Shown: in pieces, positions 2,512 through 32,607 of the stretch
How the letters are laid out: each line of letters begins with the position of its first letter
Numbering within the stretch: the stretch's first letter is position 1
NCBI GenBank assembly: GCA_965644295.1
Contig: CBFFRP010000265.1
Coordinates: 1-35,386 of the forward strand
DNA: 35,386 nucleotides
Source: Paraphysomonas bandaiensis
Lineage: Eukaryota > Protista > Chrysophyceae
Direction of reading: 5' to 3'
Position numbers and translations under genes: made by a program
Notes under the pieces: generated by a model
What the model was told of the DNA's origin: nothing
The model's input: only the letters and a program-made list of their open reading frames with translations
The model's database searches: none

Positions 2512-4010
2512 ATGGGTCAATTGCAATCAAATCACTTCGATTATGAAACTTATCTTGCTAAAGAAGATGAGAAAGTTCTAAGAACTTTACCATTATCAAC
2601 CCATCATATACATATATTTCATATGATATATAACACTATTAACACTGATAATTATCAATATATAACAATACATCAATGTATTGAATATTTTCATATAAAC
2701 AACACTTTAATCAATCAATCAATATTCAAAGTATTCAATATTGATGATAATGAACAATTATCTTTCTGTGAATTCGGTATATATCTATACATACATATAT
2801 ATATAGAACTAACCCTCTTATTATTACAGCTAGCACAATCTGGCATTTTCTAAGTATCAGTAATGATCATTTAGGTGGAATGATCTATGATTTATATGAT
2901 ATAGAGGGTAATGGACGTATGGAGCCCTCTACAGTCATCTATATGTTAAACTGCATACATGGCTGTATTAACGAACTGCAAGATAATACTATACAAAAAA
3001 CAGTTCATGATATAAGTCGTTCACGTGTAAGATATACACGATATCAATTCATTGGACTGACTAATACATGTACCACTGTACTTGCACCTATAGTGTCCCT
3101 TCATACCCATTTACGTTCAGTTATTGGAGGTTTGAAGTTCTGGCGATCGCTTGAGGCACGTCGTTCATCTGAGAATGATGGACATTTTCTCACAGCACGA
3201 TTTACTGTTGAATTGAGAGAGCAACTAGAGATGCGTGCAATGCATTCGAAACTAGTGAGGCATCTCTCCAAGATTGTTGAGGATGAAGTAAGTGGACGTT
3301 CTATTCGATCTAACCGCTATAGTCCAAAGAAGGTTGAGTTAACAACAGGAAATAAAGGATTGTACTGCACTAGAGGCAAAAGAGCTTTGTGTTGTACACC
3401 GGAAGAGCGCCGCCGTGCTCCTCCTGGTCCTTCCCGTAGCAGTAATCGTCGAAAATATGCCACGAACGATAACGAGTTATATAAGAATGGTCTTTTCAAA
3501 AGTGGACCAAAGCATGCCAAGACTAGAGTTCGCATTCAACAATTGGATAATGCTATTCCAACCGATCAATCCGCATTGTTTGCGACTTCCAATGCGGTTC
3601 GAACTCCCGCCCGAAGTGAAGTGGGAAAAACAATTGCGTATGGCGCAACAAGGATATTTCAATGGTTTTCCAATGGTGGGGATGCGCGAGTTTATTCTTT
3701 AACTAGCAGTGGGACTGCTGTCGGTACCGCAAGCAATAGTTCACAGAGTGGTCTAGAAGCTGTTCAACGTACTCATGATATTGACGAGGTGGACAAACTA
3801 TCGGAATGTAGTGTTGAAAGTGCATTTTCATTTGACCAAGAAGACGGTGGAGAAAGAGACTTTTACGCCCATGCATATGGGAGAGGTTTCATGTCTATGG
3901 ATAATATTCAAACTGATGATAGTGAGTCCACTGATTCACCAGGTGTGGTCTTCTCAGATTGTACACTGAAGTGCTTTAACACTTTAGACAGTGTTGACAA
4001 TGAAAACTAG
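2512..4010 (+). CDS. N-myristoylated EF-hand protein (calcineurin-B/NCS-like N-terminus) with a long disordered tail
   Basis: Exons 2512-2776 and 2830-4010 (53-nt GT-AG intron). Starts MGQLQS (MGxxxS). EF-loop-like segments FNIDDNEQLSFCEF and YDIEGNGRMEPST. Confidence 0.75.
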
Positions 4011-4330
4011 GTTGTTTTGCTTTGTACCAAATTGATGTTCTAACGTGTAGATACAATATAGTTGTCGTAATAAGTGTCGTATGCATATCTTACAGTGGCA
4101 AGTTTAGTCTTAACTGCATGCAGACTTACTCCATTTCAGCGAATCATCAATTAATTAATATTATTAATTAATCTATATCTATTCATCCATGTTTAGTCGA
4201 AACACGTTTTTGAGCTTTTATTAAGTGGTGCACATCTCACATCACCACTGTGAATATATAAGCACACTACAACAGCCCAACAGTACTTTTACGATGATGT
4301 TGGAAGTTATAAGCAATGCTGTAACATAAT

Positions 4331-4443
4331 TCAGGGATAGAGAACAATATATTGAAATGTTAGATAGATTTTCGCCAATAGTATTGATGGAGTTTTTAAC
4401 CGGCCCAACAATACTATTGTAATATATTGTTACCTATCCCTGA
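4331..4443. repeat. Nested inverted repeat (fold-back/MITE-like relic)
   Basis: tcagggatagagaacaatatatt (4331) pairs with aatatattgttacctatccctga (ends 4443). Inner caatagtattgatgg pairs with ccaacaatactattg. A further copy of cctatccctgacata lies at ~4567-4581. Confidence 0.6.
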
Positions 4444-4794
4444 CATATTGACAGTCTTATGATTTAGCAATAGGCGTTAAAAATCTGCACCAATGTAGTG
4501 GCTATTTGAATGCTAGACAGACAATTTAGACCTCTATCCATAACTAATCAGCACAGACTCTATTATCCTATCCCTGACATAAATGATTCCAAGTATATGC
4601 GTAAATTGTAGAGATCAAATATCACCTAATCTACTACTATTTAATTAGCAAATTTCTAAGGAAAATTAGTAACATGTTAAGTTTAAGTAGCTATCTACTT
4701 TAAGTTAGTAGGTATTAATGGCCATTATAATGGACCATTAATGGTTATCAGGCCCTGATATGGTTATCAACACTTTATTTCGGGATCTATTTTT

Positions 4795-4927
4795 CAACCT
4801 AGTCAAATTGGTTGAATTATCTAGTCACACCGAAACTGGTTTAAAAATCTAGTCAAGTAGTTGAAAAGCCTAGTCATTTAATAATTCAGTTTACAATGAC
4901 TAGGTTGACTAGGTTGCTAGGTTGACT
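4795..4927. repeat. Small element with ctagtca/tgactag subterminal repeats in opposite orientations
   Basis: Four ctagtca motifs on the left (first in caacctagtcaa, 4795-4806), mirrored by tandem tgactaggt units on the right (ttgactaggttg, 4905-4916). Confidence 0.6.
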
Positions 4928-5063
4928 CGGTGTTTTATACTCTAGCCATATATTAATGATATTGCAAACATTGTACACGTGCAATACATCACATTTCATC
5001 TTCGCAATCAAACGAAAATTGGACGTCTCTCGTTACAACAGCCTCCTATATTTCATGATTTTC

Positions 5064-7169
5064 GGCCCCCTAATATGCGAGTATACTTCTCTATGATTTA
5101 TAATAAGGTTATAAAACTTGACTGGTTCGAATAATTCATTATTATTACTAGTAGAACGTTTTATATGTCTTCATGAAAAATAGCTACGTGAAAACAGGTG
5201 CTAAGAGATGAATTCACTTTATAAACTTTATATCAGTCAAGAGAAGTAATGCTGCTTTACATCATTCAATAGAAGTGACGCTGCTGCTTCTTCTGCAGCT
5301 TTCTTTCGGCTCATTGGAGGACTTTGATGCCTATGTGCTGTACCATTCAATTCAATAGATGCAACACAGACAAAGGACCCATTCTCAATTTCAATTTCGA
5401 ATTCAGGCTCCACACCGATGTAACGTTTAGTCAGTAACTCCAATAACTCACACTTAGGATGCTTCTGTGTAGCACTGCTGCCTCTTTCTGGTGATGCGTT
5501 ACTTGATTCTCTTCTAACAGATTCAACCACCTCTTTAACATCATTCAATAGAAGTGCTGCTGCTGCTTCCTCTGCAGCTTTCTTTCGACTCATTGCAGGG
5601 CCTCGATGCCTATATGCTGTGCCATTCAATTCCATAGATGCAACACAGACAAAGGCCCCATTCTCATTCTCAATTTCGAATTCAGGCTCCACGCGTGTGA
5701 AATGTTTAGCCAGTAACTCCAATAACTCACATTTAGGGTGTTTTTGTGTACCATTGCTGCAATTCTGAGATGAAAGGGACACTTGTTGTAGTTGTCGTCC
5801 GAGAGATTCAATTTCGCCTTCAACATCGTTCAATAGAAGTGACGCTGCTGCTTCCTCTGAAGCTTTCTTTCGACTCATTGGAGGGCCTCGATGCCTATAT
5901 GCTGTACCATTCAATTCCATAGATGCAACACAGACAAAGGCCCCATTCTCATTCTCAATTTCGAATTCTGGCTCCACACCAGTACAATTTTTAGCCAGTA
6001 ACTCCAATAACTCACTTTTGGGGTGTTTTTGTGCACCATTGACGCCATTTTCAGATAAACGGGACTCATGTCGTAGTTGTTGTCCAAGCGATTCAACTTC
6101 GTCTTTGACATCATTCAATAGAAGTGCTGCTGCTGCTTCTTCTGCAGCTTTCTTTCTACTCATTGGAGGGCCTCGATGCCTATAAGCTGTACCATTCAAT
6201 TCCATAGATGCAACACAGACAAAGGCCCCATTCTCATTCTCAATTTCGAATTCAGGCTCCACGCGTGTGAAATTTTTAGCCAGTAACTCCAATAACTCAC
6301 TTTTGGAGTGTTTTTGTGTACCATTGACGCCATTTTCAGATAAACGGGACTCATGTCGTAGTTGTTGTCCAAGCGATTCAACTTCGTCTTTGACATCATT
6401 CAATAGAAGTGCTGCTGCTGCTTCTTCTGCAGCTTTCTTTCTACTCATTGCAGGGCCTCGATGCCTATAAGCTGTACCATTCAATTCCATAGATGCGACA
6501 CAGACAAAGGCCCCATTCTCATTCTCAATTTCGAATTCAGGCTCCACATCAGTGAAATGTTTAGCCAGTAACTCGAATAACTCACACTTAGGATGCTTCT
6601 GTGTAGCGCTGCTAGTAGCTTCAGGTGATGCGTTACTTGATTCTCTTCTAACAGATTCAACCACCTCTTTAACATCATTCAATAGAAGTGCTGCTGCTGC
6701 TTCCTCTGCAGCTTTCTTTCTACTCATTGGAGGACTTTGATGCCTGTATTCAGTGTCGTTTAGTTGTATGGAGGCAGTGCAGACAAAGGCCCCATTATTG
6801 GCATTCGCAATCTCGAATACAGGCTCCACATCAGTGAAATGTTTAGCCAGTAACTCGAAGATCTCACATTTAGGATGTTTAGATACTTGCATTGTGTAGT
6901 TTGTTTAGTTTCTTTATGGTTGTGATTCGGCTGGAATTGTGAGATCGCTGCACTTGAGATTCTTCACGAGTGTCCAGCTGCTGGATTCGTTCAGAGCTAG
7001 ATTGTCCTGGTTTTGGACGAGGGTCTCCATCTGAGATTATGGGACAGGGTTTTGGTACACTTGAAATCCCCTGAATTTGGGAAAAGCCTACGTTTTTTTG
7101 CCTTACGTAACATTTATATCAAGAAATATGCTATTTTCATTTGTCAGTTCCCTAAAAAAGAGGGTATTT
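5064..7169 (-). repeat. Left arm of long inverted duplication
   Basis: Reverse complement matches 11392-13217, from aaataccctc upstream of the gene to tcgcatattagggggcc downstream of it. Confidence 0.95.
5237..6892 (-). CDS. Tandem dsRNA-binding-domain-only protein, copy A (6 dsRBDs, intronless)
   Basis: Six 93-95 aa units HPK[CS]ELLELL...PEFEI...FVCVASMELNG...G...SRKKAAEEAAAALLL, matching the alpha-beta-beta-beta-alpha dsRBD consensus (PKSxLxE helix 1, KKxAExxAA helix 2). Confidence 0.9.
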   Translation of the reverse strand: MQVSKHPKCEIFELLAKHFTDVEPVFEIANANNGAFVCTASIQLNDTEYRHQSPPMSRKKAAEEAAAALLLNDVKEVVESVRRESSNASPEATSSATQKHPKCELFELLAKHFTDVEPEFEIENENGAFVCVASMELNGTAYRHRGPAMSRKKAAEEAAAALLLNDVKDEVESLGQQLRHESRLSENGVNGTQKHSKSELLELLAKNFTRVEPEFEIENENGAFVCVASMELNGTAYRHRGPPMSRKKAAEEAAAALLLNDVKDEVESLGQQLRHESRLSENGVNGAQKHPKSELLELLAKNCTGVEPEFEIENENGAFVCVASMELNGTAYRHRGPPMSRKKASEEAAASLLLNDVEGEIESLGRQLQQVSLSSQNCSNGTQKHPKCELLELLAKHFTRVEPEFEIENENGAFVCVASMELNGTAYRHRGPAMSRKKAAEEAAAALLLNDVKEVVESVRRESSNASPERGSSATQKHPKCELLELLTKRYIGVEPEFEIEIENGSFVCVASIELNGTAHRHQSPPMSRKKAAEEAAASLLLNDVKQHYFS

Positions 7170-7484
7170 GTTTGTCCTGATTATAACACGGAAAGGTCAT
7201 ACCACGTACAGAGTGTATTTATGTACAGGAGTAGATGTTGTACTGTTGTTGTTGTACTGCGACTCATATACATCTATATATACTACTCCTGTACATTCAT
7301 ATCAGCAGCCATATGTACATATGTACTCATATACTGTATGTACTCATGCATACATACTCACTCTAGACATACTCGCTGTTATATATGCATCCATCCATAT
7401 ATATACACATGCCATTAAATCCACTTCCTCTCTACCATCTTCCTATAATAAAATGCCACTCCCTTATCATCTCATATCAATCTA

Positions 7485-9270
7485 ATGCTCTCCTATCTCT
7501 TCTACATTACAATCTTCTATCTACCTATAGCTATATGCATACCTATCAAATCTAATGATGTTATCACTATATCAGCATTAGATCACACTATATGGGATTC
7601 AACAGCTATTATAACATTCTATCAAGATGATGAAGATGCTGTACAATGTCAATTTACGAATATTGCTATTGATTTTTCGACTATATATTTTATTGTATCA
7701 GATCCCATGAAAAGACAACAAGCAGCTCATGATATATTCAATTGTTGTGTAAATATTATTAAACATGATGAAATAGATGAAAGGAAATGTAAAAATTCTG
7801 TACGAAGTCAATTATGTAGTTGTTTTTATCCATTTAAATATGTTCCATCTGTCATATCACCAGAAAATGCGAAGAAGAAGTTTATGCCATTGCATGGAAA
7901 GACATGGTTGATGCATCACTGGAGTGAATGGCATCACATTGACCACTACACAATGAAAGTATTGGAGTTGCAAAACCTTTTATATAATGCAAAACATGTA
8001 AAAGATATGTGGTTCAGTGAGTTGCCTGCACCAGAGAGCATTGATCAATTACTTAGTATGGATTATGATGGAACACCCAGTGGTGATAGTTTCGAGACAA
8101 TGTTTTCAGAGATGCTGTACACAGTATTGGGTCGAAAACCTCATTATTTTGTCAATAAGAATGGTGCTGGGAAGCATTTGCGTCATCTCTACTTCGCCTC
8201 AGATGCATCCCTGAAACCCTTGCGCCGTGTGCTACCTCTATGTGAATATGTAGAGCTTGAGGAAAGTACATTAGGAGAGGACCTCTTGAGTTTAGGTGCT
8301 AAGATTGGTATCAAACACAACGCTGGTGAATATATGTCCAATTTGCTTGGTATTGGGAATTCCACTCTCCGAAAATTATTGCTAGAAGATCGCGACGGTG
8401 TGTTTCCTGTGGCGAACACCTTGGCAGAAGTGTGCTTGGAAGTACGCATCATGCGGATTATAAAATTGAACCAGGCGATGCCTCTACATAACTGTGGTCG
8501 TGGTGCATGTCAACCATACTTTTTGGATCATGCATATATGTCTCCTGTATATAAGAACAACATTCCTTGCCCGTATGAATCCAGTGCGGAGAGTGTGAAG
8601 TATGGTTTCAGGAAGTATTTAGAAGCTTATCACAGCAAATTATACGAAAGCGTGCAGTGTGTCAGTAATTTAACTGCATCTGCTAGTGTTAAGGTTGCAA
8701 TTTTACAACGGTTTGAGGGGTCTGGTACACGTAGCTTTGTAAACCTAGATCGGATGTTGCTTTCTATATACCAAATTACTTCCCAGGAATCCATTGAGAT
8801 TATGTTCATCAGTAGTAAAACTCCAGCTCATATACAAGCACTGAAGTTTTGCAGTTTTCATATCCTTATAGCACCTCATTCATCCCAACTGTCGAATTTG
8901 ATTTTCACACCGGCAGGGGTTTCAATTATTGAACTGCAGAATGAAAAACTGATTGAAGATACATTTTTATGGTTAGGAGAGCGCATGAACCTTCACTACC
9001 AGAGATTGAAGCAAGGTGAGTAACATGTTACACTATTTAGTGGTAGTTATATATATTGCAGTTGGTATATGGTTTTGTGTGTATAGTGGTATAGGTTGTG
9101 GAGATTATCAATTTTTCTATGCAGGTAATATCGCAGTCAGTGGTGAAAACAATGTACCCGATTCTGTTACCCACCCGAAGATGGCAAACCAGTTAGTACA
9201 TATTAGTAATTTTGAGAAAGCATTAGATAACGCCTTGCAAAACCTTCGTGAAAATGGTTTCGTGGCTTAA
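7485..9270 (+). CDS. Secreted/Golgi glycosyltransferase family 61-like (DUF563-type) protein
   Basis: Exons 7485-9015 and 9125-9270. Hydrophobic N-terminus. C-terminal RSFVN...Q...ILIAPHSSQLSNLIFTPAGVSIIEL resembles the GT61 HGAxLxNxxF...xxEL motif. Confidence 0.75.
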
Positions 9271-9510
9271 GCTTCGCTCAATTCATTTTATTGCTCATAT
9301 TCTTCAACCCTAAAGTGAAGTTGTACAGTAATATATCATTACTAAAAATAATATTTTACGTCATTTTTTACTTGATATTTCCATTATATTGTATAAGCAA
9401 TCACGATCATTTTGTACTGACTTATATTGCTAGTCAAGAGTGTTAGATCATCCCGCGATAAACCGAGGCATAGTCTGTAAACGGGCTTCATGTTTGGATG
9501 GTATAATTAT

Positions 9511-9630
9511 ATTTAACCACAGGCAGTAAGGAGTAAGGAGGCTATATATCGTCCCAGGTAATAACGAGGGCGAGAAGCCCGAGTTTTAAAGTTTAGACAA
9601 GAGGCGATACTCCTTATCCATAGGTTAAAT
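9511..9630. mobile_element. Short palindromic non-autonomous element candidate
   Basis: Ends atttaacc / ggttaaat, inner taaggag / ctcctta, and a central GC-rich hairpin gggc-gagaa-gccc. Confidence 0.45.
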
Positions 9631-9859
9631 TGTAGCTTATCCTCATCACGTTGAAAAGTTAATATTAGATTGTATAGCTATTTATTATTTGTAGCATGCT
9701 TGCTGTATTAAGAAATAGATGTTCCCTGAGAAATATTAAGAACACAAACGAGAACTCATATAGTTTCAAATCAATGATATTTACACTGTATGCTTAGGAA
9801 GATCAACTCAACACAATAAATCCCATGTTTCTATAACAGCTACAACAAATGTAGTCCTA

Positions 9860-10277
9860 CCTCAGAATAATACTAAGGGAATAGCAACTGCAAAGTGTTG
9901 AAATTCGTACATAACTGTGATGATGAATGTGAACAGTTGTAGGCGCAAGGGATGCTTCTTAATTCCTTAATTAGCATCATCATTGCATTTATATACAGCA
10001 GGCTTAACCTCTGCAAGTGCACCTGATCGTATGATATGAGACACACAATATAAAGAGAAGACCCAAACCCTGAAAGAACTGGGTGCCACTGCTCCTAACC
10101 ACCTATATAGCATCAGATATGGTACTTAAACTCTCCTGCAATATTGTTGAAGTTGTTTCGAAGTCCTGGATATGAAGACTGATCACTTGAACTGACCTCA
10201 TCATGATCTTCTACAGTAGTCGAAGGATGGAATATAGCTTGGAGTGCTAGATGATCTGCTCCTGATAGTTGGCTCAT
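9860..10277 (-). pseudogene. Decayed TTC36-like TPR gene fragment
   Basis: N-terminus MSQLSGADHLALQAIFHP resembles the TTC36 DxAVLQAIFNP motif. The downstream exon-like segment has LAE...AYN (cf. SAYNNRAQ) broken by a stop and a frame change. Confidence 0.45.
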
Positions 10278-10662
10278 GATTGTGGTTTCACTATGATTGT
10301 GTACTCTAATGAATTTACATGCATACATATGACTGTCAATATCATAATTAAGATAGAAGTGAGCTTCTGTTGAACCGAATATTGAAGTGCTGATATGAGC
10401 GCCCTGTTGAGCCCGAATCAGGTCAGAAAAAGCTTTTTTGAGACAATATGGGGATAAGGAATTAATTATCTGAGCGTAGTGCTCAAAGCTTGAATTATAA
10501 TAAATGAATTAAACTATGATCAATATCACTTATCATTCATTGTCATGCTGTCTCAACAGCATCATTGTCAGAGCATCAAAACAAATATTCAAACATAACA
10601 ATAAGCTCATATATACATATCTACATAACACGAGCCTAACTATAGCTTATAAGTATATAGCG

Positions 10663-11192
10663 ATGGGTCCCCTGTGAGTGTTAAGGGATGAGGAGTCCAT
10701 GAAGTGTGGGAACAACTCACTCTATGATCTGCAGTACATCTCGAGATCTTCATATGCTATGAGTGATGGCGCTCATCTTCTTCACTTCTCCACTGAAGCA
10801 TTGAATAAGGGTATTATTTATAGATTTAGTAACAAATATTACTGAACAGCTCGACGGCGGCGTTTTTTGGCAGTAACATCGGCCCATGTTACTGGAAATA
10901 CGAGAATCGTTGCAGTAACACCAGTGACATTAGTGACTACAAGATATTACCATTAAAGTTGTTACTGTGTAATATGCAGACATAAGTATCAATTTTGATG
11001 ATGTGGGAGATGTTAACAATGTTGTTGATGAGGCTAGCCGCTCCCAGTGGAGATCAAGACCAGCCGGAGCCGGTGGTCAAGTTCAGCTCTGCAGCACCAT
11101 TGCTAAAACACATGAAGGAGATGGATTTTGTTGGTGCAGGCAATGAATATATCGATGATTTGAAGAAGTTGTTGCTGTAGATGCAATATGAG
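10663..11192 (+). pseudogene. Unidentified decayed spliced-gene relic
   Basis: Coding-like blocks separated by GT..AG intron-like AT-rich gaps, with in-frame stops (e.g. ...EYIDDLKKLLL*MQYE followed by a GT donor). Confidence 0.3.
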
Positions 11193-11391
11193 GTGGGTAT
11201 ATGCATGATGGCTACACAGTAACGGCTGTATATACTCTACACAGCAGTCGTATATACATGTACATGAGTGTATATGTATATGAATGAGTGTACAACCAGT
11301 ACAGATATTGGGACAAAATACTGTACCTGATATCTAGATATACAACCTTTTTGGGCAAAGAAAAACATAAAAATGTAAAAAAACAAAGGAA

Positions 11392-13217
11392 AAATACCCT
11401 CTTTTTAAGGGAACTGAAAAATGAAAATAGCATATTTCTTATATAAATGTTACGTAAGGCAAAAAAAACGTAGGCTTTTCCCAAATTCAGGGGATTTCAA
11501 GTGTACCAAAACCCTGTCCCATAATCTCAGATGGAGACCCTCGTCCAAAACCAGGACAATCTAGCTCTGAACGAATCCAGCAGCTGGACACTCGTGAAGA
11601 ATCTCAAGTGCAGCGATCTCACAATTCCAGCCGAATCACAACCATAAAGAAACTAAACAAACTACACAATGCAAGTATCTAAACATCCTAAAGGTGAGAT
11701 CTTCGAGTTACTGGCGAAACATTTCACTGATGTGGAGCCTGTATTCGAGATTGCGAATGCCAATAATGGGGCCTTTGTCTGCACTGCCTCCATACAACTA
11801 AACGACACTGAATACAGGCATCAAAGTCCTCCAATGAGTAGAAAGAAAGCTGCAGAGGAAGCAGCAGCAGCACTTCTATTGAATGATGTTAAAGAGGTGG
11901 TTGAATCTGTTAGAAGAGAATCAAGTAACGCATCACCTGAAGCTACTAGCAGCGCTACACAGAAACATCCTAAGTGTGAGTTATTGGAGTTACTGGCTAA
12001 ACATTTCACTGATGTGGAGCCAGAATTCGAAATTGAGAATGAGAATGGGGCCTTTGTCTGTGTTGCATCTATTGAATTGAATGGTACAGCTTATAGGCAT
12101 CGAGGCCCTGCAATGAGTCGAAAGAAAGCTGCAGAGGAAGCAGCAGCAGCACTTCTATTGAATGATGTCAAAGACGAAGTTGAATCGCTTGGACAACAAC
12201 TACGACAGGTGTCCCTTTCACTTCAAAATGGAAGCAATTGTACACAAAAACACCCCAAAAGTGAGTTATTCGAGTTACTGGCTAAAAATTGTACTGGTGT
12301 GGAGCCTGAATTCGAAATTGAGAATGAGAATGGGTCCTTTGTCTGTGTTGCATCTATTGAATTGAATGGTACAGCATATAGGCATCGAGGCCCTGCAATG
12401 AGTCGAAAGAAAGCTGCAGAGGAAGCAGCAGCAGCACTTCTATTGAATGATGTTAAAGAGGTGGTTGAATCTGTTAGAAGAGAATCAAGTAACGCATCAC
12501 CTGAAGCTACTAGCAGCGCTACACAAAAACACCCCAAAAGTGAGTTATTCGAGTTACTGGCTAAACATTTCACACGCGTGGAGCCTGAATTCGAAATTGA
12601 GAATGAGAATGGGTCCTTTGTCTGTGTCGCATCTATTGAATTGAATGGTACAGCATATAGGCATCGAGGCCCTGCAATGAGTCGAAGGAAAGCTGCAGAG
12701 GAAGCAGCAGCAGCACTTCTATTGAATGATGTTAAAGAGGTGGTTGAATCTGTTAGAAGAGAATCAAGTAACGCATCACCAGAAAGAGGCAGCAGTGCTA
12801 CACAAAAACATCCTAAGTGTGAGTTATTGGAGTTACTGGCTAAACGTTGCACCGGCGTGTCGCCAGAATTCGAAATTGAGAATGAGAATGAGTCCTTTGT
12901 CTGTGTCGCATCTATGGAATTGAATGGTACAGCATATAGGCATCGAGGCCCTCCAATGAGTCGAAAGAAAGCTGCAGAAGAAGCAGCAGCAGCACTTCTA
13001 TTGAATGATGTAAAGCAGCATTACTTCTCTTGACTGATATAAAGTTGATAAAGTGAATTCATCTCTTAGCACGTGTGTTCTCGTAGCTATTTTGCACGAA
13101 GACATATAAAACGTTCTACTATTAATAATAATGAATTATTCGAACTTCGTACTAGTCAAGCTTTATTTATAACCTTATCATAAATCATAGAGAAGTATAC
13201 TCGCATATTAGGGGGCC
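11392..13217 (+). repeat. Right arm of long inverted duplication
   Basis: Reverse complement of 5064-7169, one dsRBD unit shorter. Confidence 0.95.
11669..13033 (+). CDS. Tandem dsRNA-binding-domain-only protein, copy B (5 dsRBDs, intronless)
   Basis: Five units of the same consensus as copy A. Same start (MQVSKHPK) and end (VKQHYFS). Confidence 0.9.
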   Translation: MQVSKHPKGEIFELLAKHFTDVEPVFEIANANNGAFVCTASIQLNDTEYRHQSPPMSRKKAAEEAAAALLLNDVKEVVESVRRESSNASPEATSSATQKHPKCELLELLAKHFTDVEPEFEIENENGAFVCVASIELNGTAYRHRGPAMSRKKAAEEAAAALLLNDVKDEVESLGQQLRQVSLSLQNGSNCTQKHPKSELFELLAKNCTGVEPEFEIENENGSFVCVASIELNGTAYRHRGPAMSRKKAAEEAAAALLLNDVKEVVESVRRESSNASPEATSSATQKHPKSELFELLAKHFTRVEPEFEIENENGSFVCVASIELNGTAYRHRGPAMSRRKAAEEAAAALLLNDVKEVVESVRRESSNASPERGSSATQKHPKCELLELLAKRCTGVSPEFEIENENESFVCVASMELNGTAYRHRGPPMSRKKAAEEAAAALLLNDVKQHYFS

Positions 13218-13637
13218 AAAAAAGTGAGAGGTATCGATATGGGCAGAAGTCCATTATCCAAGTTAAATATGCTGACTCTTTGACCTCTCAATTCCTTCAT
13301 AGGGGCCGACTACAAACTACAATAACTCAAGAGGAGCAGATCGTTTCAGATTACAGGCACTATCCTGCTCTATGTGGGTTGGTACCAAGGTATTCTGGGC
13401 ACTAGAGTCAACGCCGTACAAGCAAAGTGTTATTATTATTTTGGTTACATTAGTAGTACACAACGACATCTATTATTTACGAGAGAAACGACACCAATCG
13501 AATTGTTAGATCAATAGTACTATTATTAAATACGAAGACAGTCGTAATGTACGACAGGCTAGTGTGGCTAAGTATACTGTGCAATCACTATTCACTTCAC
13601 TACTAAAAGCTGTAGTTAGACGAGTAGATCGAAGTGT

Positions 13638-16477
13638 CTATTTAATGATCTTGCTGACCACACCGGCGCCAACAGTCTTACCACCTTCGCGAATAGCAAA
13701 CCGAAGTCCGGGGGACATAGCAACTGGACAGATCAGGTTCACTTGGAGTGTAGCATTATCACCGGGAACAACCTGTTACATTCAAGTGAGTGACTGGTAT
13801 CAATTTATTAGTCGTAACATGAACACGTACCATCTCAACCGCTTCAGGAAGGATAACATCTCCTGTAATATCAGATGTGCGGAAGAAAAACTGAGGCCTA
13901 TAGCAATAGCACGTTAAACAAAGAAGAATTCAGAAAAGTAATATGAGTAAAACACACTTCGTCTGGCATCAGTAAAATAGATATCATCCCAACATATCAG
14001 ATAATGAGATTCCTTGAGTTTAATCATCACACGCCATAACAAATGAAACGGCTAAGGTGTATAACGCAAATAATAATTTTAACACGCCAATACCTATAGT
14101 TGCTGAAAAAGGGTGTGTGTCTGCCTCCCTCTTGTTGGGTAAGGACGTAAATCTCAGCCTCAAAATGTGAGTGAGTGGTCACAGTGCCAGGTTGGGCGAC
14201 GATCTATATTTGAAAAATCAATTGTGAAGGGTAGGATCAGTGTGCACACTATACACATATAATACAACATTTACCTGTCCTCTCTTAATATCCTCGCGCT
14301 TTAGACCACGGAGAAGAAGTCCGACGTTATCACCCGCCTGGCCGTAGTCCATGCTCTTCTTGAACATTTCCACGCCTGTTATGCAGACATAAGCGAATGA
14401 AGTAACTGTTCGCAGAGAATATAATAGTAACATGTTCGTGTAAATGTGCATCTAGCCACGGGGCAGAGTCAACCCATATACAAGGGTAACTCTGTACGGA
14501 AGGCAGATACTAAAATATATAATGTTCCTGCACTATCAAGACCCACTCAACTCTAATACATGAGGGATCTCAAGTTTACAGGGTAAAACATATGTAGCAC
14601 GTACAAAACAAAATACTAATATACCTGTCACAGCAGTCTTCTGGGCAGGGACACCAAGTCCTAGAATCTCAATATCAGCTCCCGTCTTGATTGATCCTGT
14701 AGTTGAATGGCATAACAGTTAATCACAAATACTACAACAACTCCGTAGCAAAACATCTTAAAACACAGTATATAACTGGCATCAGTAAATCAATAATCAT
14801 CACAAGGAGTCAGTTAATGAGATTCCTTTACTATAATCATCACTTGCCAGAATAGTACAACCGTTTAACACATAATAAATTTGAAAAAATATGTAGACAG
14901 ATTCCTCAAGACATACACATCTACTCACCTGTTTCAATTCTTCCAGTTGCCACCGTACCACGACCAGATATAGAAAAGATGTCCTCAACAGGCATCAGGA
15001 AAGATTTGTCAACCTCTCTCTGGGGGGTTGGGATAGCATCCTCGACCTAAACAAAAACCACATCATTGATACCAACAAAAAGACCACAAAAATATTATGG
15101 GTATGTGATAAACAGTTATAAATGTGCATCTAGCCACGGGGCAGAGTCAACCCATATACAAGGGTAACTCTGTACGGAAGGCAGATACTAAAATATATAA
15201 TGTTCCTGCACTATCAAGACCCACTCAACTCTAATACATGAGGGATCTCAAGTTTACAGGGTGTAAAAATATATAACATAATCAATTCAGGAATACAATT
15301 TCAGATATTCATACCGCTTTCATGAGATCAATAATGGCTTGTTTGCCGAGTTTCTCATCGCCTCCACTTGCTGCGGCCAGAGCAGATCCCCTATTAATTA
15401 CATTTTAGTTCTGAAATAACGTACGCAACCAATGGATTGCACATTTCGAAATATATATTCAACCAAAACGGACATACACTTTCACAAAATATAATTACAT
15501 GTGCAGTAATATTCATAGCGTAATGCACCCACCTGACGATATGGATATCATCGCCAGGATAGTCGTACTGGCTCAAAAGCTCACGGACTGACAACATATA
15601 ATTCGTTAGAAACAAAATGCAAATATAATAATGTGTCTGTATACTAAAATATAAACCACTAAGCAACTGCTCAAAAAAGAGTACGTTTCATTCCACACAT
15701 ACAGAACACAATCTGTGGTCGGTGAAGAGAGAAGGTTGTTTTCACAGCAGGGCTTTGCTTTAGATACAATTGGGTTCAACATCACCATATTAATACATAT
15801 ATAACATTCGATTATGGTACAAGTATCACCTATACGTTAATAGATTTGTAATAATATCTTACCTTCCATCTCTACTAATTCCAAGAGTTCCTCATCATCC
15901 ACAAGATCTACTTTGTTTAGGAAAACAACTAGAGAAGGAACGCCGACCTGTCTAGCAAGGACGATGTGTTCTCTAGTTTGGGGCATAGGACCATCTTGTG
16001 CCGACACCACAAGAATACCTCCATCCATCTGCAGTTAAGTCAGTACAGAGAATTGATTACTATCATACCAACTACTACACCTGTGCTGCCCCAGTAATCA
16101 TATTCTTCACATAATCAGCATGTCCAGGACAATCCACATGAGCATAATGTCTATTTTCAGTCTCATATTCTACATGAGCTGAATTAATAGTAATTCCACG
16201 TGCTTTTTCTTCGGGGGATTTATCAATATCCTCATATGACATGGCTTTCCCACCACTCATTTCTGATAATACACGTGAAATTCCAGCTGTAAGTGTTGTT
16301 TTTCCATGATCAACATGTCCAATTGTTCCAATATTAACATGTGGTTTATTTCTAACGTAATTACTTAAGCATTTGCTTAAAACTATTAAGGAAATGATTC
16401 GATTAATAAGGGAAAGGAAAAGGAATGAAGTTACCTTGATTTGATGACTTTGATAAACGGAATGCTCTTGCTAGCAT
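13638..16477 (-). CDS. TUFM: Mitochondrial elongation factor Tu (11 exons)
   Basis: Exons 16477-16435, 16382-16081, 16028-15863, 15587-15533, 15390-15315, 15046-14929, 14696-14625, 14375-14275, 14203-14094, 13897-13831, 13772-13638, all with GT-AG introns. Motifs [38 protein letters not shown]. Basic/Ser-rich presequence [12 protein letters not shown]. Confidence 0.96.
13964..14036 (-). ncRNA. Intronic box C/D snoRNA (EF-Tu intron 9)
   Basis: Minus strand: tggcg-t-GTGATGA(C)...aaggaatctcattat-CTGA(D')...GGGATGA(C')...CTGA(D)-tgcca, with a terminal stem. Guide is shared with the intron 6 copy. Confidence 0.85.
14441..14584 (-). ncRNA. Intronic box H/ACA snoRNA (EF-Tu intron 7); 3' pocket fits the 18S site guided by U71/SNORA71 in humans
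   Basis: Hairpin cctgta...tgcagg, H box ACATTA, hairpin gtatctgcc...ggctagatgc, then ACA-ttt. Pockets uuccgu/cccgu fit 18S ACGGG-U-A-ACGG(A/G)G, and aaacuug/ugau fit AUCA-U-U-CAAGUUU (rRNA from memory). Confidence 0.85.
14776..14850 (-). ncRNA. Intronic box C/D snoRNA (EF-Tu intron 6)
   Basis: Minus strand: ctggca-a-GTGATGA(C)...aaggaatctcattaa-CTGA(D')...GTGATGA(C')...CTGA(D)-tgccag. Perfect 6-bp terminal stem and four consensus boxes. Confidence 0.9.
15119..15262 (-). ncRNA. Intronic box H/ACA snoRNA (EF-Tu intron 5), identical to the intron 7 copy
   Basis: 144 bp identical to 14441-14584; same hairpin-H-hairpin-ACA layout. Confidence 0.85.
15629..15787 (-). ncRNA. Candidate intronic box H/ACA snoRNA (EF-Tu intron 3)
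   Basis: Two hairpins (tggtga...tcaccg; tctgtatg...tatacaga) followed by ACA-tta. Both pockets fit neighbouring sites in the LSU segment AGAUACCACAAAAGGUGUUGGUUCA (from memory). H box is not canonical. Confidence 0.6.
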
Positions 16478-16882
16478 TGTAATTTAAAGTATGTTTATAT
16501 ATGATACTCTGAAGGAATATGAGAGCAATGAGATGACTATGTATGTATGTATAGAGAGACTGAGATAGTGACCTTCATACTACAGTGGCATCCATCATAT
16601 GAACGAGTGGACTTGAATACAGTGTGTTTCAATAGGATTCAACACCACACAAAGTTGATGATATATCAAAGAACAACGGGCTACTAGGTAATCCGTAGTA
16701 GAGTATCTTGAAACGACAAAACTGAAATTATAAGACGAGAATAGCAGTTGAGGGGCGGTTTTGTCCCATTATTAATAATAACGGTTTTTTGAATATATTA
16801 TCGGGGGTTTTATATATTTATGTATATATTTCCAGGAAAATCGTTCATATTTGTCTATGTAGATTTCCATACAGTGGTATAT

Positions 16883-24674: not shown

Positions 24675-24885
24675 CTAGTACACAGGTACACGTATATGTA
24701 CAGAGGTACACTCTGCAGAGTACTATGATACTATACACTGCTGTGTGTCATACATGTACACAGGTACATACCACAGTACTATGATACTATACACTGCTGT
24801 GTCATATATGTACACAGGTACATACCACAGTGCTGTGTCATATCTATAGGTATACACTGGTACAGACCACAGTACTGAGATGTAG
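24675..24885. repeat. Degenerate ~55-60 bp tandem repeat upstream of TatD
   Basis: Recurring gtacacaggtaca...cacagtactatgatactatacactgctgtgt units. Confidence 0.7.
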
Positions 24886-30676: not shown

Positions 30677-32607
30677 ATGAATTACGGTGGAAGTGATATT
30701 GGTGCAATTGTTGCAGATATAGGCAGTCATTCCTCTAGAATAGGCTTTGCAGGAGATGACTACCCCAAAGCCTATACATCAACGGTAATTCACATACTCT
30801 ACTACCACTTTAATACAATATCATAACATACGGTATTATATTATACTACAGTGTGTAGGTATTATAAATAATCATACAGAAGATCAAATGGAAGTTGAAG
30901 TGAGTCAAGAGAATTCTAAGAATATTCATTTCAATTTATCAGAATTTCATCCACATATGGAAATTGAACATATTGTACGGGATGGTATCATAACTAACTG
31001 GGATTTACTTGAAGAATTATGGGATCATTCATTAGCCAATCATCTTAAAGTAGATACGAAGGAGACGCCTATTCTCATTGCAGAGAAGTCGTATAATTCA
31101 TCTGATGCCAGACAGAAGTAAGTCACTGTATTGCTATATATATATAGTGTATACACGTATGTATTGTATGGCACTAGTATTAAGAGTAGTGTATGAATCT
31201 AGTGTACATGTGTAGTATATGAATGTATGTGTACATGTATAGTACATGAGTATAGTGTTTACACGTATGTATCATATGGCACTAGTATTAAGAGTAGTGT
31301 ATTAATACAGTATGTGAATCTAGTATATGAAGATATGTGTACATGTATAGCATGTGAATACTTGTGTATGAAGTATAGTATATTAAGAGTAGTGTATGAA
31401 TCTAGTGTACATGTGTAGTATATGAGTATAGTGTATACATGTATGTATAATATGACCCTGGTATTAAGTATAGTATGTGAATATAGTGTGCATATATAGT
31501 CCATAAATACAGTGTATAAAGCTAGTATATGAATCTAGTTATATATATATATACTAATACGTTCTACAGAATGTGTGAGCTTATGTTTGAGAAGTACAAT
31601 ACTCCAGCACTGTTCATATCCAAAGATGCAGTACTATCATGCTATTCGTGTGGTAAAACAACTGGTGTGGCTATTGATTGTGGTGCGAGTGGGACGGTAG
31701 TCACCCCTGTATATGAAGGATGGGCTGAAACTAGTGCCATTAGTCGAGGGGTAGTTGGGGGGAGGTTCATGGATGCTTATCTCTTAAAAATGCTGGGTCG
31801 CCATATGCAGCAACACTATTCACTTCCACAACCAAAGCCTCTATTCCGTCTCAAGAAAGTTGTTGATCCCGTCACAGGAGCATTATCTTGCCAGCCCAAT
31901 AATGCCCTTGAGAATGTTCATCCTAGCTATGACGCGTATATGCATCTGGAAATGGCTCGTGACATGAAAGAATCGGTATGCCGCACCGCTGAGGCGTCAT
32001 CGACCCTCACAGATGGAGATCCACGGTATGCGAATATTCCCCTGCTCCCGCATGTTCTTCCGGACGGCACAGTAGTGGACGTCGGGGCAGAGCGGTTTCT
32101 CCCTCCAGAATTACTCTTTGATCCTTCACAGCTTGATTTGGAGGCACCAGAACTGGTGGCTCTTGGGTTGGCGCCCTCTTGTTCTGGTGGTCTTCCAGGG
32201 AGTACTGATCCAGTGGAAAAGTTAGTGGTGGACTCCATTTTGCGCTGTGATGCTGATAGTCAGGTATGCAGAATGTGTCTATATTCATCTGTTTGTTAGA
32301 TCGTATGTATTTCAATCACGAGACTGCTATACAGGCCACCTTCGCCAACAATTTAATTGTGACGGGCGGAAACTCTGCCTATGATGGCATGCCCGAACGC
32401 ATCCGACAAGAGGTCGATCGAGCCGCCCATAAAAATGCTCCAAATTGGAGGACTAACGTACTTTCCTCAGGAGCTAAGGAACGCCCGATATGTACCTGGA
32501 TAGGGGGTTCTATTATAGCATCTCTTGGGTCTTTACGCGAAATGTGGATGGCGCGCAGTGAATATGATGAACATGGAAGTGCCTTAATCGATAGGAAGTG
32601 CCCGTAG
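30677..32607 (+). CDS. ARP4: Actin-related protein 4 (ACTL6/BAF53-like)
   Basis: Exons 30677-30784, 30852-31117, 31570-32263, 32335-32607. YGGSDIGAIVADIGS...RIGFAGDDYPK, ELMFEKY, WIGGSIIASLGS, C-terminal RKCP. Confidence 0.92.
31140..31500. repeat. Low-complexity minisatellite expanding ARP4 intron 2
   Basis: Recurring tagtattaagagtagtgtatgaatctagtgtacatgtgtagtatatga units. Confidence 0.75.

Follow-up and report, generated by a model that had tools for sequence, protein, structure and literature searches.

Two genes in the stretch of Paraphysomonas bandaiensis DNA analyzed here (the window, 35,386 nucleotides) appear to encode nothing but double-stranded RNA (dsRNA)-binding domains (dsRBDs), and the question is whether they are genuine genes and what such arrays may do in the cell. 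Gene A (5237..6892, reverse strand) is an uninterrupted open reading frame (ORF) of 551 amino acids that consists entirely of six tandem dsRBD units, and gene B (11669..13033, forward strand) is an uninterrupted ORF of 454 amino acids that consists entirely of five such units. In both genes, an in-frame stop lies 4 codons ahead of the ORF start. Using Tandem Repeats Finder, we found a period of 285 nucleotides in 5.7 copies for gene A and of 279 nucleotides in 4.8 copies for gene B, with 86% matches in each. The translation gave a unit length of 93-95 amino acids, except for the final unit of either gene, which has 75. The ORF calls, the translation and Tandem Repeats Finder were all in agreement with the coordinates and unit counts of the original prediction, including the difference in unit number between the paralogues.

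On the reverse strand, unit A1 (amino acids 5-98; 6599..6880) is a divergent first unit that is near-identical to B1 (dS 0.02). It is followed by A2 (amino acids 99-193; 6314..6598), which carries a 25-amino-acid linker type, and by A3 (amino acids 194-288; 6029..6313), which has no positional counterpart in gene B. The core of A4 (amino acids 289-383; 5744..6028) is nearest to B3 (dS 0.07), and that of A5 (amino acids 384-476; 5465..5743), with a 23-amino-acid linker type, is nearest to B4 (dS 0.07). A6 (amino acids 477-551; 5240..5464) is terminal and ends in a 5-amino-acid tail. The forward-strand units of gene B are B1 (amino acids 5-98; 11681..11962), B2 (amino acids 99-193; 11963..12247), B3 (amino acids 194-286; 12248..12526), B4 (amino acids 287-379; 12527..12805) and the terminal B5 (amino acids 380-454; 12806..13030), also with a 5-amino-acid tail.

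Pfam assigned whole protein A to the dsrm family (PF00035) with 126.5 bits (E 5.8e-37) and whole protein B with 116.2 bits (E 9.7e-34), against a curated cut-off of 23. The family was matched in every unit, and ten single units scored 24.2-33.2 bits in the genome scan (cut-off 23). Dicer_dimer was a secondary match of the array protein, and the Pfam scan of the two proteins found no catalytic domain and no other family beyond dsRBD-type matches. AlphaFold2 predicted a helix-strand-strand-strand-helix arrangement for unit B2 (mean pLDDT 85), and the single-unit model (pLDDT 85; H5-16, E23-29, E32-41, E44-49, H56-90) has the alpha1-beta1-beta2-beta3-alpha2 order of the dsRBD fold. The full-length model repeated this fold five times with confidence (pTM 0.29), with disordered linker ends; the linkers between units are short, in part helical and in part disordered. 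The best solved matches of the single-unit model were all dsRBDs, both by Foldseek (DCL4, Loquacious, RNase III) and by VIA-align (Z 9-11.7, rmsd 1.2-2.0 over 63-76 residues). That the units are dsRBDs, and that the proteins contain nothing else, was thus correctly predicted.

Selection on the two genes was evident from their codons. The 1,005 codons contain no stop and no frameshift, despite a between-unit dS of up to 0.4-0.8. The dN/dS ratio was 0.27 overall and below 0.5 in each sub-region. It reached its minima in helix 2 including the KK motif (0.11) and at the beginning of helix 1 (0.18), the two parts of the canonical RNA-binding face. Because of these low ratios, the proposal that the system is diversifying was not borne out, and positive diversifying selection was rejected as a candidate, none of the sub-regions reaching 0.5. 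Genes A and B are very probably real, selected multi-dsRBD genes.

The units had also been described as nearly identical, which is an overstatement. Among units 2-6, the core DNA identity was 86-97% (mean 92%; dS 0.07-0.4), and it was 80-85% between unit 1 and the other units (dS 0.4-0.8). Positionally matching units of genes A and B were closer to each other than neighbors within one gene, so that the array is older than the gene duplication and is not being continuously homogenized, contrary to the active homogenization that had been envisaged as one option. The unit pattern is that of a recombinant mosaic. In other strains, short-read contigs end within the array. In a tree with other dsRBDs, all 11 units formed one clade (support 96/97), indicating that the array expanded within this lineage.

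It is uncertain from the sequence features whether the units bind dsRNA, because they have no GPxH loop, the third lysine of KKxAK is a glutamate, and the unit pI is 5.1-6.1. In region 1, the helix-1 glutamate (E11) is invariant in 11/11 units and in 23/23 aligned dsRBDs, and the canonical glutamine next to it is replaced by leucine or phenylalanine in a hand alignment to TRBP dsRBD1. In region 2, the units have no GPxH loop, and beta1 and beta2 are connected instead by a short acidic ENENG turn without histidine; in unit 1 the turn is ANANNG, also without histidine. Region 3 reads R-K-K-A-A-E, so that two lysines are kept (K57 in 11/11 units, K56 in 10/11). Bacterial RNase III dsRBDs have the same lysine-to-glutamate variant at the third position and still bind dsRNA. 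None of the 11 units deviates at K3, H4, K6, E11, R47, H48, R55 or K57. Every unit is acidic, its net charge lying between -1 and -4; for the complete proteins, the net charge is -23 and -16.

Such features could also mean that the units resemble type-B domains which have largely lost RNA binding, and that the array is a protein-protein scaffold clustering several silencing enzymes, with a Dicer-like helicase or Dicer_dimer domain or an RNA-dependent RNA polymerase (RdRP) fusion as suggested docking partners. The missing GPxH loop with its short, acidic beta1-beta2 turn, the acidity of all units and the secondary Dicer_dimer match are consistent with this reading, as are the highest VIA-align Z scores, which went to protein-binding dsRBDs: DCL4 dsRBD2 with the DRB4 CTD (11.7), DRB7.2:DRB4 (11.2), Staufen dsRBD5 (10.5) and Loquacious dsRBD3 (10.3). 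However, these scores were equal to, or at most 1.7 above, those of RNA-binding dsRBDs, and Z gaps under 1 count as ties. The best sequence identity among the structural matches (29-31%) was to an RNA-binding dsRBD, that of Aquifex RNase III, and the most constrained and invariant residues lie on the canonical RNA-binding face, not on the outer faces of the helices or in the sheet. We consider a protein-protein scaffold somewhat unlikely.

No close relative of the arrays was found among 1.8 billion representative proteins, and the best protein-library match was a generic dsrm domain (E 8.8e-6, 23-39% identity). A word-indexed protein search with protein B and a single unit gave no match, although the protein B query was swamped by low-complexity words and such blanks are little informative. 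Metagenome contigs, searched with protein and then alignment queries, and viral contigs yielded no relative, and a feature-based atlas search returned only weak dsrm leads (scores of at most 0.83). A viral origin, or a role as viral silencing suppressor, was rejected, as there is no viral relative, the base composition is like that of neighboring genes, and the flanks are cellular. Against solved structures, a single unit matched only DGCR8 (E 0.96), and a profile of the units alone matched no PDB chain or dsRBD at E of 1 or below. A mixed profile (A1) favored the RNA-binding domains 1-2 of TRBP and Loquacious over domain 3; this preference was discarded as evidence because the units-only profile matches nothing, so that it stems from the other sequences in the profile.

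In plants and animals, Dicer is as a rule assisted by dsRBD-only proteins. Like the arrays, the plant DRB proteins (HYL1/DRB1, DRB4, DRB7.2) and animal TRBP, PACT, Loquacious, R2D2 and RDE-4 have dsRBDs without a catalytic domain; the predicted unit fold superposes on domains of these proteins (Z 9.2-11.2, rmsd 1.2-2.4), and the silencing enzymes that they serve are present in this genome too. However, they have two or three mutually divergent dsRBDs and usually a specialized Dicer-binding last domain or tail, whereas the arrays have five or six near-equal units and no distinct tail beyond 5 residues. The sequence likeness goes no further than the generic domain, the array units being acidic and without the GPxH loop. 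Orthology to a named Dicer-partner dsRBD protein was not found with the units-only profile against the PDB or among the library matches, all of which had E of at least 8.8e-6.

Staufen is also a multi-dsRBD protein, with four or five domains of which some bind RNA and others protein, and its dsRBD4 and dsRBD5 were among the structural matches of the unit (Z 10.0-10.5). Its domains are ancient, mutually divergent and specialized, whereas the array units form a single recent clade, and the Pfam scan found no Staufen-specific region in either protein. We know of no dsRBD arrays that are longer or more uniform than genes A and B. Three uncharacterized arrays from environmental assemblies, P0005 (four units) and P0002 and P0003 (five each), are also dsRBD-only and share the domain subtype, in which the beta1-beta2 turn is short and lacks GPxH and helix 2 is of the KKAAE type. 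However, their identity to the units of genes A and B is only 23-44%, and the units within them differ from one another and are for the most part basic. In the tree, the units of each array clustered by lineage, indicating that these arrays and those of genes A and B expanded independently. No silencing gene adjoined P0002, P0005 or P0001, whose neighbors encode MORN and LRR proteins. The expectation that the family has no described counterpart agreed with the diatom RNAi literature and the large protein libraries, in which none was found. No dsRBD-only Dicer helper has been described in diatoms, and knowledge of their silencing machinery is limited (PMC2724275, PMC3145265).

Genome scans detected about 16 dsRBDs, 11 of which belong to genes A and B. 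The only others detected were in an RdRP fusion, a DHX29-type DSRM-like ORF, an RNase III ORF and one weak match. The genome has two Piwi loci, two RdRP loci and a Dicer-like ORF with Helicase_C, Dicer_dimer and two RNase III domains; the Dicer-like ORF has no dsrm match, and about 27 residues remain after its second RNase III domain. The RdRP fusion (G000:C355:111155-119411) joins a helicase, an RdRP and a nucleotidyltransferase, with an N-terminal dsRBD. Outside genes A and B, nothing in the genome matched the array protein except this dsRBD (37-41% identity over a whole unit), which has the short beta1-beta2 loop of the units. Unlike the units, it is single, basic (pI 9.1), keeps KKxAK intact and is joined to enzymes. 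The tree grouping of the units with it was weak (74/78), and a complex prediction for one unit with this dsRBD scored 0.00, an outcome that is neutral as to binding. Genes A and B showed neither synteny with Dicer or RdRP nor any other direct link to them.

The functional role that we infer for the arrays lies in RNA silencing, where they would be multivalent binders of dsRNA or scaffolds. The whole account, in which a selected paralogue pair with a history of duplication has this role by the following mechanism, is held at about even confidence. Proteins A and B would be soluble beads-on-a-string dsRBD chains. Each unit may bind dsRNA weakly via the helix-1 glutamate and the basic residues at the N-termini of helices 1 and 2 (KHPK, RKK), and five or six consecutive units would bind long dsRNA (roughly 60-100 bp) with high avidity. 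Within the siRNA pathway, the array protein could then retain long dsRNA or pass it on, acting between the RdRP fusion and the Dicer-like enzyme.

A more specific and unlikely version is that the array is a length-gauging avidity receptor for long dsRNA serving the RdRP fusion. Its weak, acidic units without region 2 would capture only dsRNA spanning five or six units, and so discriminate between short hairpins of the cell and the products of RdRP or viruses. The number of units, shifted by unequal recombination between or within the inverted copies, would be tunable under selection by RNA viruses or transposons.

Binding might also serve the opposite end. In plants, DRB7.2/DRB4 is reported to sequester dsRNA away from Dicer, and the arrays could likewise cover long dsRNA of endogenous origin, for example transcripts of inverted repeats, and act as a brake on silencing. 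The evidence for dsRNA binding applies here equally, the proteins lack a tail for catalysis or Dicer docking, and DRB7.2 was one of the nearest structural matches. However, nothing separates such a brake from a cofactor that promotes silencing, and the features that make RNA binding doubtful (missing GPxH, acidic units) weigh on it just as much; we regard it as quite unlikely.

If the multivalent binder that we prefer does bind dsRNA, the five and six units and two linker types of genes A and B would form a natural series relating domain number to dsRNA length preference, and the genes would be candidates for the missing RNAi cofactor of the host. If it does not, the locus would hold an unusual whole array of protein-binding dsRBDs. 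Both genes are small and intronless, and are concrete targets for knock-out and biochemistry.

The genes lie in the arms of an inverted duplication. In the left arm (5064..7177, reverse strand), gene A is flanked by about 285 nt on its upstream side and by about 173 nt on its downstream side; in the right arm (11384..13217, forward strand), the corresponding flanks of gene B are about 285 nt and about 184 nt. Arm identity was 99.6-100% at the 5' ends and 91-94% at the 3' ends. The putative promoter and 5'UTR of gene B (11384..11668, forward strand) are identical to their counterpart in gene A (6893..7177, reverse strand), with 100% identity over the proximal 207 nt and the likeness lost past about -285. 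The 3' flank or 3'UTR of gene A (5064..5236, reverse strand) is 94% identical to that of gene B (13034..13217, forward strand). The two genes point outward from a unique 4.2-kb spacer (7178..11383), which is outside the dsRBD genes and contains a GT61-like ORF (7485-9023, forward strand) and a dispersed repeat (about 9500-10460). An Rfam scan of 4000-16500 matched no family. An assembly fold-back artefact was rejected, since the arm boundaries are crossed by independent contigs.

In the account that we prefer, the array would have grown by internal duplication in this lineage and then been copied as an inverted segmental duplication. Unequal recombination may then have altered the unit count, while gene conversion would have homogenized the 5' ends.

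Poly(A) metatranscriptome contigs covered the ORF and 3'UTR, and the RNA depth was zero in flanking intergenic bins that were covered by the DNA runs. One poly(A) RNA contig aligned on the 3' end of gene B carried the letters of copy A at four diagnostic positions. At least one of the two genes is transcribed.

With two arms of about 2 kb, inverted, 90-100% identical and 4.2 kb apart, the 8-kb inverted repeat could instead yield a long hairpin transcript that feeds Dicer, the locus being an siRNA source and its ORFs incidental. However, the genes are divergent, and the RNA contigs were limited to ORF-sized intervals, with zero depth at 11401-11600 (inside the inner boundary of the right arm) and at 11001-11400 (spacer). 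Since both ORFs are also intact and under purifying selection (dN/dS 0.27), a hairpin RNA product is very improbable. Large libraries yielded no close homologue of this lineage-restricted family, and repeats are prone to misassembly, but a young functionless expansion or assembly artefact is extremely improbable given the open reading frames maintained at high dS and low dN/dS, the crossing of the inner and outer arm boundaries by independent assemblies from other organism labels (4 records), and the presence of the sequence in poly(A) RNA. As a separate observation on this genome, at least seven silicon-transporter loci were found.

Translation gave ORF A at 5237-6892 on the minus strand, encoding 551 aa in six units (A1 to A6), and ORF B at 11669-13033 on the plus strand, encoding 454 aa in five units (B1 to B5). 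Each unit of either protein consists of a 70- to 71-aa core and a 23- or 25-aa linker, and a 5-residue tail closes the last unit in both. Tandem Repeats Finder reported a 285-bp period with 5.7 copies for array A (5255-6880) and a 279-bp period with 4.8 copies for array B (11681-13015), both with 86% matches. In the Pfam search, both proteins matched dsrm (E = 5.8e-37 for A and 9.7e-34 for B) and, more weakly, the related family Dicer_dimer, and no catalytic domain was found in either. An in-frame stop lies four codons ahead of each ORF start, and no targeting-peptide extension was seen by eye at the N-terminus, where the first domain opens the protein directly. Coordinates, unit counts and dsrm matches agree with the original prediction of two dsRBD-only arrays of six and five units without a catalytic domain. 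A 209-aa ORF also runs antisense within gene B (12223-12852, minus strand) and is most likely a by-product of the gene's repeat, in which that frame has no stops.

We then analyzed the predicted fold. For unit B2, AlphaFold2 was run on an alignment of 23 sequences and gave a model with a mean pLDDT of 85 and the order helix-strand-strand-strand-helix. Foldseek showed that the top PDB matches of this model were all dsRBDs (DCL4, Loquacious dsRBD1, RNase III, DRB4 and HYL1), and VIA-align superposed it on solved dsRBDs with Z of 9-11.7 and rmsd of 1.2-2.0 over 63-76 residues. The model of full-length B contained five confident domains (pLDDT 80-90) with a pTM of 0.29; helix 2 extends 10-18 residues into the linker in each unit, and the final 10-16 linker residues have pLDDT below 50. 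The model pictures protein B as a string of domain beads whose joints are short and flexible.

Purifying selection was evident across the units. The pooled pN/pS (Nei-Gojobori) of all unit pairs was 0.28, and dN/dS in units 2-6 was 0.27 overall; by region, helix 1 gave 0.18 where it begins and 0.49 for its end together with the next loop, the sheet gave 0.37, and helix 2 including the RKK motif gave 0.11. Since dN/dS exceeded 1 in no region, the earlier description of the system as diversifying is not supported. The residues constant in all 11 units include K3, H4, K6, E11, R47, H48, R55 and K57 (numbered from a unit that includes its two leading residues), positions that in canonical dsRBDs belong to the RNA-binding face. 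The units had also been described as nearly identical at the DNA level, which proved too strong: the cores of units 2-6 are 86-97% identical to one another (mean, 92%), and the core of unit 1 is 80-85% identical to those of the others.

Genes A and B, which are transcribed divergently, each occupy one arm of an inverted duplication, with the left arm (gene A) at 5064 to about 7177 and the right arm (gene B) at about 11384 to 13217. Contigs from records with other organism labels (n=4), which are independent of this assembly, span both the inner and the outer arm boundaries and rule out an assembly fold-back; all short-read contigs break within the arrays. The identity of the two arms changes by degrees along their length. 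It is 100% over the 207 nt 5' of the ATG, with similarity reaching about -285, then 99.3% in unit 1 and its linker, 93.7% in unit 2, 91.2% in the last unit and 94% in the 3' flank; past the arm ends there is no similarity. We read this gradient as a duplication of older date, with recent gene conversion having homogenised its inner (5') ends. A best-match sliding map of B on A showed register jumps at multiples of 279 or 285 bp, which indicates that the units are recombinant mosaics. The dS values of positional counterparts (A1-B1, 0.02; A2-B2, 0.12; A4-B3, 0.07; A5-B4, 0.07; A6-B5, 0.20) were compared with those of neighboring units inside one gene (0.14-0.39). Because the counterparts are closer than in-gene neighbors, the multi-unit array predates the copying of the gene.

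The stretch is present in DNA runs of four organism labels, in marine metagenomes and, with a word share of 0.38-0.50, in four poly(A) metatranscriptome runs that derive from a single sample. When read depth was examined over 7401-13400, the RNA run covered 11601-13200 and the GT61 ORF described below, and had zero depth in 7401-8000, 11001-11600 and 13201-13400, all three of which are covered by the DNA runs. An RNA contig matching 12908-13120 agrees with copy A at the diagnostic positions 13047, 13073, 13077 and 13081, so the 3' end and 3'UTR of copy A are present in poly(A) RNA. No contig distinguishing copy B was found among the RNA contigs listed.

A HMMER search of 1.84 billion representative proteins returned only 12 matches at E<=1e-3 (best, 8.8e-6; identities, 23-39%), all of them generic dsrm proteins, and word-indexed protein searches and contig scans returned nothing. 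The weak matches include other dsRBD-only arrays of eukaryotes from environmental assemblies, P0005 with four units and P0002 and P0003 with five each; these are of the same short-loop subtype as the units of A and B. A further weak match, P0001, is treated below. In a domain tree, all 11 A and B units formed one clade (96/97) and the four units of P0005 another (99/98), indicating that such arrays expanded independently in separate lineages. In published surveys of diatom RNAi genes, the candidates are Dicer-like proteins, Argonautes and RdRPs together with one helicase-dsRBD protein, and no dsRBD-only array is listed (PMC2724275, PMC3145265). In text searches of the literature, we found nothing comparable for six or more tandem dsRBDs. 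Genes A and B are a real, lineage-restricted multi-dsRBD gene pair within the class of dsRBD-only proteins.

The genome (62.6 Mb, 669 contigs) was searched for silencing genes and other dsRBDs, and the counts are lower bounds. Outside the two genes, the array protein matched the genome at one place only, a dsRBD with 37-41% identity at the N-terminus of a plus-strand open frame that runs uninterrupted for 2,752 codons (G000:C355:111155-119411; L005/L006). In Pfam, this frame contains dsrm, DEAD, Helicase_C, RdRP (E = 1e-109) and a poly(A)-polymerase-like nucleotidyltransferase palm, and it combines in one chain the three activities of a yeast-type RdRP complex. The environmental protein P0001, two dsRBDs followed by a helicase start, resembles this fusion. 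The Dicer-like open frame spans 1,695 codons (G000:C377:212683-217767, plus strand; L008); it contains Helicase_C, Dicer_dimer and two RNase III domains and has no dsrm match, with about 27 residues remaining after the second RNase III domain; its first helicase exon is apparently located upstream. There are two Piwi loci, a second RdRP locus besides the fusion, and at least seven silicon-transporter loci, the last of which mark the genome as that of a diatom. Family and profile scans found dsRBDs only in both arrays, the RdRP fusion, an RNase III ORF, an ORF whose DSRM-like domain is of DHX29 type, and a single weak match. A weak dsRBD match at G000:C451:112979-113605 (minus strand) shares a 477-codon frame with an RNase III domain, as a small RNase III-dsRBD protein, and another at G000:C314:86006-86164 (minus strand) has an in-frame TGA.

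The results establish that both proteins consist of arrayed dsRBD folds, that purifying selection acts on them and that at least one copy is transcribed. From the sequence we infer that they may act on dsRNA in silencing; the architecture is interesting, and the function is a proposal. A single unit could bind dsRNA weakly and the array could give avidity for long dsRNA, a mechanism to which we assign about an even chance. Action on dsRNA in silencing is favored by the conserved Glu of helix 1, the basic KHPK that opens this helix, the RHR ending strand 3, the RKK opening helix 2 and the pattern of constraint. The main rival is that the array is a protein scaffold. Several features speak against canonical binding: a short acidic ENENG turn replaces the GPxH loop, Glu takes the place of the third Lys in KKxAK, and all units are acidic (pI 5.1-6.1, compared with 9.1 for the dsRBD of the RdRP fusion). 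The closest structures also include the protein-binding DCL4 dsRBD2, DRB7.2, Staufen dsRBD5 and Loquacious dsRBD3, with VIA-align Z of 10.3-11.7 for these four versus about 10 for RNA-binding domains.

Between the inverted arms lies an intact ORF of 512 aa for a GT61-family glycosyltransferase (7485-9023, plus strand), which poly(A) metatranscriptome contigs cover with zero differences. The spacer also contains a dispersed repeat (9450-10460) without a long ORF, with 693 first-look candidates in the genome at about 82% identity and a word depth of up to thousands in read sets; it is probably a non-autonomous transposable element. Elsewhere in the window, the intergenic DNA at 24693-24831 and 31143-31449 contains AT-rich tandem repeats whose periods are 54, 108, 27 and 13-26 bp.
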